Shown here one piece after another: positions 58,804 through 64,000 of a stretch of 64,000 bases of DNA; position 1 is the stretch's first letter; each line of letters begins with the position of its first letter. The notes beneath the pieces were generated by a model. It was not told the origin of the DNA and did no database searches. It saw nothing but the letters and a program-made list of their open reading frames with translations. The position numbers and the translations under genes are program-made. Source of the stretch: Geosiphon pyriformis uo1. Lineage: Eukaryota; Fungi; Glomeromycota. The stretch is from NCBI GenBank assembly GCA_016748015.1, contig JAAOMT010000161.1, positions 30,077 to 94,076 on the forward strand, given 5' to 3'.

Positions 58804-59627
58804 CTCAATAAACTGTTACAAAAAGGTTTAGGAGGGTATATATTATCATAACTGAACTCAATTCGTAATTGCCGCCAAAAATTGTAAAAGTTTTGCTTTG
58901 AAAAATTTGCAAAGATTGCAAGCTTTAAACCTATAAAAAGCTCAGAAATTTCCTGGGCTTGACCAATCATGGTCTATATAAAAAAATGTAATTTTCCTTA
59001 AATAACTATTGACTAATATATAAAATTGGTATTAATATCGGGCTCCGTTTTATTTTTTGTAAAAAAGTTGCTGTTTAAATATTTGGTGGCGAATCTCGAT
59101 AAAACAATTAGGCATTTTTTGAATTTCATAAAAATTGGGCAGTTTGTTCAATTTGGTTTTATAAAATTTGATATAAGTATTTTTTATTAAAAGTAATTTA
59201 TTTATTTATTTTTGCAAATCTTATGTTTGTAACCAAATCAAAAAAAAATAAATAACCATTATTTTGGTTATTATAATTAAAAAACAGTTATACCAAAATA
59301 AACAAAAAGAAAGAAATAATAAGAGCTCAGAATTGGAAAAAGATTTTGATTACAACCCGTTAAAAATCTATAAATTTTCAACAAAAACAACTTCTTTTCA
59401 ATAATAATTCAGCTATTTGGGGTGGACATGTTTTTACGAAATTATTTAGGTTCAGCTCTTGCCACTATTATAGATGAAGCAATTGACTGCACGAAATGAA
59501 GTTATTAAACATAATACACAGTGACAACAAAATGCACCCAATACATTATCTTTCTTTTTTTTCTCATAAAGCATTACATCAAACTATTACAATTCGTGTT
59601 CAAAATTTTAGTAAATCTTTTTGGAAT

Positions 59628-59963
59628 CATTTTTTTTACTCATGAATTCTACGCTATCATTATTCCGCCAGGTATCTAACATGGTGAATCGAAAAACAAG
59701 AAAAATTACACAAGTTTTAGACGTATAAGTTTCATTTTGGATAATAACATGAGCTCCTAATTCCTCTGCTTTCGCTATGAAACGTTATCGAAATCGATAA
59801 TATGCCCAGCCAAGCATTTTTCGGACCGAGTTTCGTAGTTGGTGTGGAAAACATATATAAATGCCGAAATTGTAATACTGTAATGGATAGAGGTGAAAAT
59901 GGCGCTTGGGGAATTTTTCTCCGGGCATTGCTTGATTCTCTCTGGAGATCATGCAGGAAATAG
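59628..59963 (+). pseudogene. Fanzor2/TnpB-family RNA-guided nuclease relic (C-terminal RuvC-II, Zn finger, RuvC-III) with internal 127-bp inversion
   Basis: After re-inverting 59710-59836 it reads EFYAIIIPP/VSNMVNRKTRKITRNSVRKMLGWAYYRFR*RFIAKAEELGAHVIIQNETYTSKTCSWCG/IYKCRNCNTVMDRGENGAWGIFLRALLD (slashes are frameshifting deletions). Confidence 0.88.
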
Positions 59964-60543
59964 TAGCAATGCTTAACATTGTTTATTATTGATATATTAC
60001 AATCCATCCGGCCTATTTTCTATGGATTCACTTGTGGATTATTCAAAGGAGAAACTAGTTTTGAACATTCCAATATTGGTTTATAAAGTTTTTGATATTC
60101 GGGTTTTATAATTCTTAATGGTATGCGTGGAAGAAGCTCTTGGGAATAGATTCATTCAATATCTGCCATGCAATATAATATAGCATTGAGGATGCAAAAT
60201 ATTCAAGCCTATCACTTTCATGGGATATAACGATCAAACCCTTATAGATCTATAAAAGGGCTTTGGTTTAGCTATTCCAAATCTTTTTTTGAAGGGAATA
60301 AAACTTTTCGATGTGACATACTACCTTGTGGTTGCGTTTTTACGAGTTCCAAGACCATATGAGCTTAACTCCGTTTAATCAAATGCTCCTCAGAAAATAA
60401 TGACAAATGTACAGGAGGAATTCATGTTTAGAAAGCATTGAATGGTTTTCTTTAATCTAAACGTCATTCCGTAAGATGAAAACTTTTATCACATGTAAAC
60501 AACATTCTTGAGAAAAGGATCATGGGAAATATGACCTCATTTC

Positions 60544-62888
60544 CTATGAATGAACCAAATCTCGTAAAAATAGCAAGATTCCCTTGGCATCGAGTTCTAA
60601 AGAGACCCGATCTTCATATGTGGGATCAGGAAAACCATATGAACCATCTAGAGCAGTTTTATGATGTATTCCATTCCAGGTGGTTGAATCGGAACAATTT
60701 GTCGTGAGCGAGGTTCCAACAGTGAAGGTGTGATGGTAATAAAAGGCAGAGACCAGGCGAATAAATAATAATGGCCCCCATTTTAGATATATAGGGCATA
60801 TAGCATTTCGTGTGGTCCCTTTGAATGGCATACCGGGTGAAGAGTGACAATCGACTTGTGTTCCATTTGGGATTCCGTAGCAAATAAACCATGCACCCAT
60901 ATCTTCATTGAATATGTAAGCCATATCTCCATCAGGCATTGGGCCTACAGGCGGAGCGGCCATAGGGTCGTAACATGGGGTTTTACAATTAGGGCATGCT
61001 CGTGGAGAAGATGGCATGCTAAGCCATGTTTCGATGCAAGATTTATGAAATAGGTGAGGGCAGTTTTTCATTTGAACAATATCTACTACTTGGACGTGAT
61101 TTAAGAACATTACTTCAGCGCAAATAGTGCATCCCTCCTGTGTAGAATACGCTTCCTGGAGCCGTTGCGCATTTGCCTGGACCAATATTTCTTCAAAGTT
61201 AACTGCTCGTGTTGATTCCACCTGTCGGCGTCTAGCATAAACAATACCCTCGGAGCTATCGAGATTCCTTAACATATCTAACAGATCAGAATCAAGCTGC
61301 TTGGGAGAGCTACCCTTTTTCAACATCACCCACTCTAAGTATGAACCCAAATTTGGAAATCTTGTTTTTGATCCACTAGGCCAATATTGCTGGTCCGCAA
61401 GTGTAACACCGATGAAATTGCTAATATTTGTCGAATTGATTTTTAACATCCATTGCTGCATTGTTGTTTTTGCCTTACGCAGTGCATAGTCCTTTGGTGG
61501 GTTAGCGGATGCAGAAGAGACATTTAAGGGCATAGCTAATTGAAAAGTTCCAGTAGGGCTACTAAGGCCGGTGTTTGTCGTTAGGAGATTAAAATTTGAA
61601 CCAAAATATGTTGGTTTTGCTAAATGGCCCTGATGGTGTGTATTATGAAAACCTTTAGGCTTAAAATTGTAAGAAGATTTGAGATTATTCTACGAAGAGA
61701 TAAACAAAAAGAAAAACATGCAAGAAAACTCTTGATATAATTTTACCTGAAAACTCATAGGACTCATTCCATGTGTTATGGGATGAGCAGGTTGCAAGCT
61801 ATTGAAAGAATTATTGCTATATAAGCTCTGGACCATCCCATTTGAGAATGGCCCAGAGGTAGGTGGGAATCCAAACATAGAGCCTGACGTGGGGGGAAGA
61901 AGCTGTTGGAAAAAATAGTGCAAGATTTTAACTCAAGTTCTGTAAGTAAACGAGAAGGTAAAAATGCTGGAGTTGATTAATATACAATATATAATCCATA
62001 CCGCAGACAGTGTTATCGTTCGTTCATAATAGATCGCCAATATGGGTAAAACCTGAGCGTTTTCGTATACAACATATTCGTCAGCCACTGCAACATAATG
62101 TTTTACACAATCATGTCCCTTTGGTGGGTACTTGGTGTGGGAATCAACTGCCTGATGTTTGTTATTGTCATATATCTTGCCAAGAGCAGTTACGCATACG
62201 ATCAGACATCTTTGATGGTTATTATTACGACTTGAAAATAGGTCACATTTTTCAAAACTGGGGGATAAGTATATGGCCGGGCCACAATTACCAAATGATC
62301 GAGATAGACGGCCATCCTAAGAAATGCATAGGAATTAGCAAGCCAACAAAGGTGAGTCAGACATAAATCATAATTATTGTGAGAAATCAAGGCAAGTTAC
62401 CGTAGAAAGAGAATTTAGACTTACCAATCCGTGCTCAAGTATAGAGTTAACGTTATCAGGATGGGTACCATGAAAGAGAACTGTGTCATTGAAAAAAGTC
62501 ATAAATTCCTCTGAGGCTAAATTTGAGGGCCTAGCCTGAGCTTCCATTATTTTTTTTGTATTTTTAAAATGCTGATACCTAAATTTAAAAGTTTAAATGA
62601 GTGTAATTAACTAAGGATTAAACATGGTTTTAAAACTTCTCGATCGAACCTCTCCCATATCACGCGATTCTGTAGGACTGCGATCGTACTGATCCCGCAA
62701 CTCACAGCCTCCAATTGATCCTTAAAATATGACGCTATATCAATGTATAGAGGGTCATTCTGACTCAGGCCTACCCTTGTGGGTACAGAAGCTAAGGGAA
62801 CGTTGAAATATTCGCGTATACGCTCCAAGATCAGACCACCGTCTTCTAGTTTATATTCTCGCTTATCGAGAAATTGTTTGAAGCTCAT
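60544..62888 (-). CDS. PARP-type ADP-ribosyltransferase domain fused to Deltex-type RING-H2 + DTC E3 ubiquitin ligase (~660-670 aa, 5 exons)
   Basis: Exons 62888-62650, 62578-62425, 62316-62002, 61902-61747 and 61689 (or 61659)-60544, all GT-AG and phase-compatible. PARP: LQNRVIWERY, LFHGT, GPAIYLS, ALGK, DEYVVYENAQVLP. RING: CTIC..CPHLFHKSC..W..CPNC. DTC: GPMPDG, FTVGTSLTT, WNGIHHKT, YGFPDPTY..ELDAKGI. Confidence 0.88.
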
Positions 62889-63664
62889 CGAAAAAGCTAG
62901 CGTTCAATAATTCTTTTTGGTGCAAAGTGAGTATAAGTGACTATTTTGAGCTGGGAAATTAGAAGTTAGAGAGGTCGCTAAATACTGGTTTCAAAGAACT
63001 TCGGCAAAGTTTGGTAATCGGTTATTAGCAAACATCTCTTTAGAGGGGGGCTTAGTAGTGTTTCACGGATCTTGAACTTATTTGTGGCGCCAGTATAAAA
63101 TTAAAAGTTTATTGAAAATCAAAACATGCGTCATTTATGATCAAATTCTAGGTTGGTCTATTTATAATCCAATTTTGGTTAAAAAAACTCTTTTCTTCAC
63201 TAAATTTGTAACCTTTAGTATCTTAAGAAATACAGCGGCAACCGAATATCTCCCAAAACCACCTAGAAAAAGAAAAATAAGCTTCAAGGTCACCCATGAC
63301 AAATCAGATCTCTTCTCTTGGTGCCACCTCCTAAACTTCACCCCTATTGTAAATACACCTTTGGATTCCAAGACATCTTGCCTTTAGTATTTCTTAAAGG
63401 TGTAAATAAACCTTTGAATTGAATGAAATTCGAAAATTTCATGATTTTTTTCGATCCTTAAATAATAATGAATTGTATTTGACATTGGCGATCTTATGAT
63501 AAATCCCATTTTTAAACCTTGCCCGTAGAATTAAAAATTCGGAAAATCGCAATGGCTTGACGCCTTGGTTCTTTAAATTCGGAGGTTTTCTCGAAGCTTG
63601 GACCACATTTTATTGATATGATCGAGTCACTTTAAAGTCTTGAAATTCATTTTACATATTTCCA

Positions 63665-64000
63665 TTACTCGAGCTTAGCCTTTTTTCTATAGCATTCATT
63701 TTTTTTCTCTACTGAATCACACGTTTTTCTATCCATTATTTTAACATACTTACGTAATTCCATTTCCATTCCTCCGCCAAGAATAACCATGGTTAATTTA
63801 TTTTGAGTGTTTCTGGCTGTAACATCAGCTGATAAGGAAAGGTATTCTTTCAATGACTCATCATCATTTTCAGGTATGATTTGATTATTAGGAAGAAGTT
63901 GTTTTAGTTTCAAATTGCCAATGGTACCGAGAAAATTTTCAAAAATCAGAGATCTTGTTTTGTGAATATACCATTGCTCATAAAAGTGTTTGAATATTCG
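63665..64000 (-). CDS. Possible 3' end of an unidentified gene running off the window
   Basis: Frame is open from the window edge (RIFKHFYEQWYIHK...) to a stop at 63665; no recognisable motif. Confidence 0.4.
   Translation of the reverse strand, partial: RIFKHFYEQWYIHKTRSLIFENFLGTIGNLKLKQLLPNNQIIPENDDESLKEYLSLSADVTARNTQNKLTMVILGGGMEMELRKYVKIMDRKTCDSVEKKNECYRKKAKLE

Follow-up and report, generated by a model that had tools for sequence, protein, structure and literature searches.

The question raised by this locus is whether a single fungal gene can encode both the enzyme that deposits ADP-ribose and the ligase that attaches ubiquitin to it. The stretch of DNA analysed here, referred to below as the window, comprises 64,000 nucleotides (nt) of a contig of Geosiphon pyriformis (JAAOMT010000161.1), and the element in question is a gene on its minus strand (62888-60544), the PARP-Deltex gene, in which five in-frame exons encode a protein of 659 amino acids. 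A first-pass annotation had proposed that this gene joins an N-terminal PARP catalytic domain to a RING-DTC module of the Deltex type through a low-complexity linker, as a Rosetta-stone fusion on a single chain. This is supported by spliced transcripts, by an identical public gene model and by 24 further fungal proteins: a single polypeptide does join a PARP domain with an intact catalytic triad to a RING-DTC module, and the PARP-RING-DTC arrangement is a real, conserved and uncharacterised architecture, the logic of which matches an established pathway.

The longest simple open reading frame (ORF) at the locus has 329 codons (60544-61533) and is accompanied upstream by shorter open pieces separated by GT..AG stretches, in a contig that is AT-rich (32-39% GC in genes, down to 10% in intergenic DNA). 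The full-length sequence used throughout this study is that of a public protein model (P0001, deposited as KAG9288126.1 / KAG9303056.1 and named 'hypothetical protein'), which was verified against the window exon by exon and is 100% identical to it over the long ORF. When translated separately, the exons tile this protein contiguously (residues 1-79, 81-131, 132-236, 237-288 and 289-659, with a split codon, AG/G, supplying R80), and all four introns are of the GT..AG type, so that the exon coordinates and motifs of the first-pass annotation are borne out, in frame, by the public model. The start codon is an ATG at 62888, and 18 nt before it the frame is closed by a TGA.

Evidence of splicing may be obtained from a public sequencing run (X1), in which 59% of the words sampled from the locus are present. 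In this run a contig of 1624 nt (record 1) joins 62112-62002, 61902-61747 and 61659-60312, skipping 99 nt and 87 nt, and a contig of 252 nt (record 2) joins 62553-62424 to 62315-62194, skipping 108 nt; all three skipped segments read CT..AC on the plus strand, that is, GT..AG on the strand of the gene. Because three canonical introns are precisely removed, and because the genome contains no intron-less copy, X1 can be taken to represent complementary DNA (cDNA). Of the four introns proposed by the first-pass annotation, the second, third and fourth are therefore seen to be removed exactly, while exon 1 and intron 1 fall outside the cDNA coverage and intron 1 is supported by orthologue conservation instead: the alignment reads WER/YQ at the junction of exons 1 and 2 in ten out of ten Glomeromycota proteins, which supports an end of exon 1 at 62650 and a start of exon 2 at 62578. 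An alternative form of intron 1 (donor after 62637, exon 2 from 62571, reading WERFDRE/HFK) was rejected in view of the WERYQ of these ten proteins and of the P0001 model. The X1 contigs differ from the genome at two positions, 61162 and 61552 (on the plus strand, C>A and A>G), neither of which changes the encoded residue (R454 and T324), and these could be allelic or strain variation between the sources of DNA and RNA.

The locus might also be read as a pair of neighbouring genes that gene prediction has wrongly merged, one for a small PARP and the other for a RING-DTC ligase with its start at the ATG at 61533. In keeping with this, the longest simple ORF begins with a methionine and holds the whole RING-DTC module, and models consisting of RING-DTC only are known in Entrophospora and Glomus cerebriforme. 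We give this reading next to no credence, as exons 3, 4 and 5 are spliced together in a single cDNA contig, record 1, and a PARP exon is thereby linked to the RING-DTC exon in frame, which refutes the two-gene alternative and rules out the polyadenylation between 62002 and 61533 that had been named beforehand as the sign of two genes. Moreover, the frame stays open for 42 codons upstream of the methionine at 61533, as far as the acceptor at 61659, and the fused model is found in nine Glomeromycota orthologues and in about 15 proteins from other phyla. The PARP-Deltex locus is one expressed, single-copy gene, and it is the sole DTC locus in the 128-Mb assembly.

With regard to the N-terminal half, Pfam calls were judged by the gathering score (26.7 bits for PARP, PF00644, and 25 bits for DTC, PF18102), and the whole of P0001 matches PARP with 44.7 bits (E 1.4e-11, residues 49-203). 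Taken singly, the exons give colinear matches that stay below the threshold (20.1 and 20.6 bits), exon 2 (62425-62577) covering profile positions 34-69 (E 5e-4) and exon 3 (62002-62316) positions 83-137 (E 3.5e-4). When aligned with PDB sequences, FHGT, AIYL(S) and DEYVVY fall on the H-Y-E triad of PARP4 and tankyrase-2, identifying H116, Y147 and E211, and K154 and F158 fall on tankyrase-2 K1067 and Y1071 (PARP1 K903 and Y907), which confirms the triad, the lysine and the phenylalanine that the first reading of the sequence had placed at these positions. A profile of 22 family members compared with the PDB matched PARP12, PARP4, tankyrases, PARP15 and PARP1 at about 1e-12, none of which stood out from the others.

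An AlphaFold2 (AF2) model of residues 1-245, with a predicted local distance difference test (pLDDT) score of 85.4 and a predicted template-modelling score of 0.83, displays the beta-alpha-loop-beta-alpha fold of ADP-ribosyltransferases (ART) and is matched by Foldseek to the catalytic fragments of PARP15, PARP10, PARP13 and PARP12 (E about 1e-13, target-normalised template-modelling score 0.76-0.88). The fold neighbours of this model are of the compact macro/CCCH-PARP type without a helical regulatory domain, although the catalytic Glu is kept in the Geosiphon domain, unlike in human PARP15, PARP10, PARP13 and PARP12. A PARP profile and a PARP structure, the lack of which the first-pass annotation would have taken as a refutation, are thus both matched, the profile above the Pfam cut-off on the whole protein and the structure by the fold of PARP catalytic fragments, and by every sequence and fold criterion applied the protein is a member of the PARP catalytic family.

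In the C-terminal half, Pfam finds a DTC domain with 87.3 bits against the cut-off of 25 (E 1.3e-24, residues 540-649) together with a RING, and both are also recovered from the long ORF alone (DTC E 1.7e-24). The RING is of the H2 type, with the ligands C465, C468, C488, H490, H493, C496, C510 and C513, and lies directly N-terminal to the DTC, the alignment with DTX2 running unbroken from one into the other. The best sequence matches in the PDB are DTX2 6y22 (E 4.9e-23) and DTX1 6y5n (4.3e-19), and an AF2 model of residues 335-659 (pLDDT 80) matches the RING-DTC of DTX2 and DTX1 and the DTC of DTX3L, at no more than 39% identity, with the DTC fold matching 6y22, 6y5p and 3pg6. By every sequence and fold criterion applied, the protein belongs to the RING-DTC (Deltex) family as well.

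The contacts made by DTX1 and DTX2 with ADP-ribose and nicotinamide adenine dinucleotide (NAD+) have been described (PMC7500938, PMC7442474), the DTX1 pocket comprising R534, S566, W577, H581, T584 and the aromatic residue 593 (PMC7500938), and a His-Glu pair of the DTC (DTX2 H582 and E608) has been proposed to activate the ribose 3'-hydroxyl for ubiquitin transfer (PMC7615817). In the Geosiphon protein R572, S605, W616, H620, T623, Y629 and E643 align with DTX2 R535, S567, W578, H582, T585, H594 and E608, so that the first six of these would form the predicted pocket and H620-E643 the His-Glu pair. The motifs GTS and HHKT and the C-terminal Glu, which the first-pass annotation had noted as kept by the DTC, stand in the same alignment, with GTS, HHKT and the Glu of SLEL corresponding to DTX2 S567, H582 and E608. 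Neither a WWE nor a KH_DTX3L domain was matched by Pfam in P0001 at E<=0.01, which places the protein outside the named animal Deltex subfamilies, and neither a Macro domain nor a nucleic-acid-binding domain was detected by Pfam in the same protein. The Rhizophagus orthologue bears the NCBI name 'WWE domain-containing protein', while the Geosiphon protein is without a WWE match.

The two halves are separated by a low-complexity linker of about 110 residues (237-345), the length and sequence of which vary among orthologues, followed by a region of about 115 residues (346-460) that is mostly helical and conserved, with S423, G426 and R432 invariant. This second region is common to the proteins of Glomeromycota and Mortierellomycota and to the RING-DTC-only proteins; it gave no Pfam match, no PDB fold match beyond RING-DTC and no lead in the Atlas. 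It could be a substrate- or partner-binding module.

The fusion is neither peculiar to Geosiphon nor absent from databases. With the PARP part as query, full-length orthologues of 615-720 amino acids carrying PARP, RING and DTC, 60-74% identical in the PARP part, were found in nine other Glomeromycota: Ambispora, Funneliformis and Acaulospora (two species of each), Diversispora, Rhizophagus clarus and R. irregularis. Among the best 150 RING-DTC representatives, 15 more have a homologous N-terminal PARP, 13 of them cluster representatives from Mortierellomycota (proteins of 1000-1565 amino acids from Mortierella, Podila, Entomortierella, Gamsiella, Actinomortierella, Lobosporangium, Linnemannia, Gryganskiella and Lunasporangiospora) and two from the chytrids Blyttiomyces and Borealophlyctis. 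The PARP part of the Blyttiomyces protein, used as a query for chytrid relatives, matched only itself. NCBI and UniProt already hold orthologues with precomputed PARP, RING and DTC annotations under automatic names such as 'Poly [ADP-ribose] polymerase' and 'putative E3 ubiquitin-protein ligase dtx2'. Comparison of domain architectures across fungi, which the first-pass annotation had suggested as a check, thus yields 24 further fungal proteins in which both active sites are conserved.

In the resulting alignment of 25 proteins, the PARP triad, the eight RING ligands and the R, S, W, H and E of the DTC are invariant except in visibly truncated models, the exceptions being gaps in four evidently partial or broken models; at the other active-site positions any replacements are conservative, save that T623 is replaced by Ala in Mortierella sp. 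GBA35. The triad is invariant in all ten Glomeromycota, and together with G117, K154 and an aromatic residue at 158 it is kept in every model complete through these positions, across three phyla. The equivalents of H620 and E643 are kept in all homologues except the C-terminally truncated Blyttiomyces model, and the residue at the aromatic pocket position (Y629) varies among Y, F, H and W within the family. Both catalytic centres are thus under purifying selection, and the fusion, being present in Glomeromycota, Mortierellomycota and chytrids, can be no younger than the ancestor that these phyla share.

Judging from the conserved residues, we consider the likeliest function, and a reasonably probable one, to be that of a self-contained writer, which would ADP-ribosylate its targets and then ubiquitylate the ADP-ribose. 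In such a scheme the PARP half would use NAD+ to ADP-ribosylate itself and/or nearby substrates, the DTC pocket would then bind the deposited ADP-ribose, and the RING would recruit ubiquitin carried by its conjugating enzyme (E2~ubiquitin); His620-Glu643 would activate the 3'-hydroxyl of the adenine-proximal ribose, to which ubiquitin would become ester-linked, giving an ADP-ribosyl-ubiquitin hybrid mark. Tethering of the modules to each other would direct the first and the second step to one set of targets. Candidate processes may include maintenance of the genome, defence against viruses or transposons, and stress signalling.

A number of observations weigh against the interpretation of the locus as one gene for such a writer. 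The run X1 is unrecorded as RNA, its status as cDNA being deduced from the precise removal of introns, and since exon 1 and intron 1 lie outside its coverage, intron 1 rests on orthologue conservation. The H-Y-E triad alone proves neither activity nor a choice between mono- and poly-ADP-ribosylation. In the DTC, the position of DTX2 His594 is occupied by Tyr629, and by Phe in other Glomeromycota, which is nevertheless an aromatic residue as in DTX3L (Tyr), and an aromatic residue is what is conserved at this position and is argued to suffice (PMC7500938); the position of DTX2 S568 is Leu, at a place where, in the structures, the ligand is contacted by the backbone alone. Models that consist of RING-DTC only are found in Entrophospora (344 amino acids), in Glomus cerebriforme (P0176, 401 amino acids) and as a JGI protein (475 amino acids), and no PARP exon was found within 4 kb upstream of the Entrophospora gene. 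These models retain the conserved pre-RING region, and their ligase half may have been freed secondarily, by loss or by splitting of the gene, or the models may be incomplete.

Other interpretations have to be considered with regard to what the two domains do. If the PARP half were a pseudo-enzyme or a sensor like PARP9 or PARP13, serving as a binder of NAD+ or ADP-ribose or as a scaffold, the protein would be a Deltex ligase with an unusual targeting domain, and its structural neighbours do come from the macro/CCCH-PARP group, which includes the inactive PARP13, just as its similarity to characterised PARPs is low (17-22%). Known inactive PARPs, however, have lost triad residues, whereas here the triad, G117, K154 and the aromatic residue at 158 persist through three phyla in all models complete there, which makes a pseudo-enzyme unlikely. 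PARP9 itself is inactive in auto-modification assays (PMC7500938). Somewhat easier to credit, although still improbable in our estimation, is that both domains are active and that the ligase acts as a conventional ubiquitin ligase (E3) directed by ADP-ribose to lysines of the marked protein, perhaps for degradation, without any ester being made, which is the mode originally reported for DTX2 on PARylated substrates. The RING-DTC of DTX2 ubiquitinates PARylated substrates via ADP-ribose binding (PMC7442474), the pocket residues are conserved and the logic resembles that of RNF146 with tankyrase, but the His-Glu pair needed for hydroxyl activation is invariant and pure binding would not require Glu643; in any case the lysine and ester outcomes are not mutually exclusive.

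A different kind of substrate is also conceivable, namely nucleic acids, with the PARP half modifying phosphorylated DNA or RNA termini that the DTC would ubiquitylate, or with the DTC acting on single strands directly. PARP10 and PARP15, both fold neighbours of the PARP half, belong to the PARPs for which modification of nucleic acids has been reported, and the DTC shares with DTX3L the Tyr at the DTX2-H594 position. The RING-DTC of DTX3L is reported to ubiquitinate single-stranded DNA and RNA (PMC11460948). Given that Pfam detected no nucleic-acid-binding domain in the protein and that the middle region has no assignable fold, we regard nucleic acids as very unlikely substrates.

For the self-contained writer acting on ADP-ribosylated targets, an extension to the whole family can be offered tentatively: the fungal PARP-RING-DTC proteins may possibly constitute an ancient, self-sufficient ADP-ribosyl-ubiquitin ester writer, with an origin no later than the divergence of chytrids and Mucoromycota. 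If this is true, the coupling of PARP and Deltex would not be an invention of metazoan evolution, but either ancestral to opisthokonts or assembled repeatedly by virtue of its advantage, as in the reverse-order fusion of a diatom, and the family would represent a minimal natural one-polypeptide system making the hybrid mark from NAD+, E2~ubiquitin and a substrate, which could serve a fungal innate-defence or genome-stress pathway. Outside the fungi, the diatom Thalassiosira profunda has a protein with the reverse domain order, TAZ-RING-DTC-PARP (P0181), and two proteins from run assemblies are PARP-RING-DTC (P0179 and P0180); compared with Geosiphon, these uncharacterised non-fungal fusions are 36-38% identical in the DTC and weakly similar in their PARP parts. 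The reversed order in the diatom probably reflects an independent fusion, and such recurrence argues for a functional coupling of PARP and Deltex. One of the two proteins from run assemblies (L007:3001-4899) lies on a 28.5-kb contig of dense, apparently intron-less genes (VIT/VWA, RNA ligase); this contig could come from a giant virus or from a protist with a compact genome.

The known animal equivalents act as separate proteins: PARP14 or PARP9 with DTX3L, PARP1 with DTX2, and tankyrase with a Deltex ligase. DTX3L-PARP9 (with PARP14) resembles the Geosiphon protein in pairing a Deltex RING-DTC ligase with an ART domain of the macro-PARP type, and the Geosiphon DTC is 39% identical to that of DTX3L over 133 aligned columns, with the same Tyr at the DTX2-H594 position. 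In contrast, the animal system consists of two proteins encoded from a bidirectional promoter, whereas the fungal one is a single polypeptide which has neither macrodomains nor KH-like domains and in which the triad is intact, PARP9 being inactive. With one chain, no Macro domain and an intact triad it is therefore not a DTX3L-PARP9-type system, although it may work like one. DTX1, DTX2 and DTX4 (WWE-WWE-RING-DTC) provide the closest sequence matches (DTX2, DTX1), the ADP-ribose pocket and the His-Glu pair being kept, and differ from the fungal protein in that the latter has no WWE domain, carries the writer on the same chain and has Tyr or Phe at the H594 position. In the RNF146 (Iduna)-tankyrase system, ADP-ribose made by a PARP is likewise read by a RING ligase that then ubiquitylates, but RNF146 reads poly-ADP-ribose through a WWE domain, has no DTC, is a separate protein and modifies lysines. 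The diatom protein and the two proteins from run assemblies are similar to that of Geosiphon in having PARP, RING and DTC on one chain, the diatom protein differing in its reverse order and its TAZ finger.

The early-diverging fungi that carry PARP-RING-DTC were unsequenced at the time of the 2010 PARP catalogue. Fungal clade-6 PARPs with an E2-like domain (FPE/UBCc) and a Dictyostelium PARP with U-box and Macro domains were described there (Citarelli et al. 2010, PMC2964712), and these are precedents for PARP joined to ubiquitin-pathway domains in fungi and Amoebozoa, differing from the present family in that none has a DTC, while Deltex is unmentioned in the paper. A 2026 preprint on the co-evolution of DTX3L and PARP9 samples only Metazoa and places the connection of the two systems in metazoan evolution. 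Full-text literature searches yielded no description of a PARP-RING-DTC protein; Aravind et al. 2015 ('The natural history of ADP-ribosyltransferases'), which lay outside the search, could mention it.

Because the functional link between PARPs and Deltex ligases is established and the proteins are already in databases, the finding is less striking than the first-pass annotation held. Animals make the hybrid mark with PARPs and Deltex ligases that are distinct proteins, and the pairing of individual PARPs with individual Deltex ligases is still under study. A naturally occurring enzyme that carries both intact sites on one chain would constitute independent gene-fusion evidence for one pathway, and could also serve as a compact reagent with which to reconstitute the two-step reaction and to trap it for structural work. 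It would extend PARP-Deltex coupling beyond animals to arbuscular-mycorrhizal fungi, Mortierellomycota and chytrids and, separately, to a diatom, and would offer fungal biology a candidate gene of stress or defence that the yeast models lack. The ADP-ribose-ubiquitin hybrid mark is itself a recent and active topic (PMC7615817, PMC12407064, PMC13061329).

The features of the gene and the further entries and loci referred to in the text are collected in Table 1.

Table 1. Features of the PARP-Deltex gene of Geosiphon pyriformis (window coordinates), with RING-DTC-only entries and other ADP-ribose loci
Feature	Position or entry	Strand	Remarks
Exon 1	62650..62888	-	residues 1-79 and the first 2 nt of the codon for R80; strands and helices at the N-terminus of the PARP domain
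Intron 1	62579..62649	-	71 nt, GTTCGA..TTTAG; based on orthologues and public model P0001
Exon 2	62425..62578	-	residues 80-131; FHGT motif, triad His116 at 62472-62470
Intron 2	62317..62424	-	108 nt, GTAAGT..CTTAG; absent from cDNA record 2
Exon 3	62002..62316	-	residues 132-236; triad Tyr147 (62271-62269), K154, F158, triad Glu211 (62079-62077)
Intron 3	61903..62001	-	99 nt, GTATGG..AACAG; absent from cDNA record 1
Exon 4	61747..61902	-	residues 237-288; low-complexity linker rich in Pro, Ser, Gly and Asn
Intron 4	61660..61746	-	87 nt, GTAAAA..TTAAG; absent from cDNA record 1
Exon 5, coding part	60547-61659	-	residues 289-659
Exon 5, start	61489..61659	-	residues 289-345; remainder of the low-complexity linker
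Conserved pre-RING region	61144..61488	-	residues ~346-460
RING-H2 finger	60982..61131	-	residues 465-514
DTC domain	60571..60969	-	residues ~519-651; His620 at 60666-60664, Glu643 at 60597-60595
Stop codon TAG	60544..60546	-	
3' untranslated region	60312..60543	-	at least 232 nt; cDNA record 1 extends to 60312
RING-DTC-only entries	L005 + L006 (Entrophospora); P0002/P0151; P0176 (Glomus cerebriforme); P0170		
Other ADP-ribose loci	C651:760154-760850; C531; C771; C701; C675:300830-301261; C682:392735-393127		

With regard to the surroundings of the gene, the contig of the window (C774 in our numbering), and with it the window itself, ends 1.1 kb upstream of the ATG. A 3954-nt contig (C245) is a 100% copy of the last 3.5 kb of this contig, window positions 60472-64000 corresponding to C245:426-3954, and this duplication explains why the protein has two NCBI accessions. 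A second copy of the gene on C245 was considered and rejected, the 100% identical contig being redundancy of the assembly rather than a paralogue. Elsewhere the genome has a PARP1-like locus with a strong match and several PARP-like loci with weaker ones, and Macro and PARG are represented by one locus each, so that the fusion gene is accompanied in this genome by other writers and by erasers of ADP-ribose. Just downstream of the 3' untranslated region, at about 59360-60013, lies a dispersed repeat present on many contigs in dozens of copies of 70-96% identity, which often take the form of adjacent inverted pieces.

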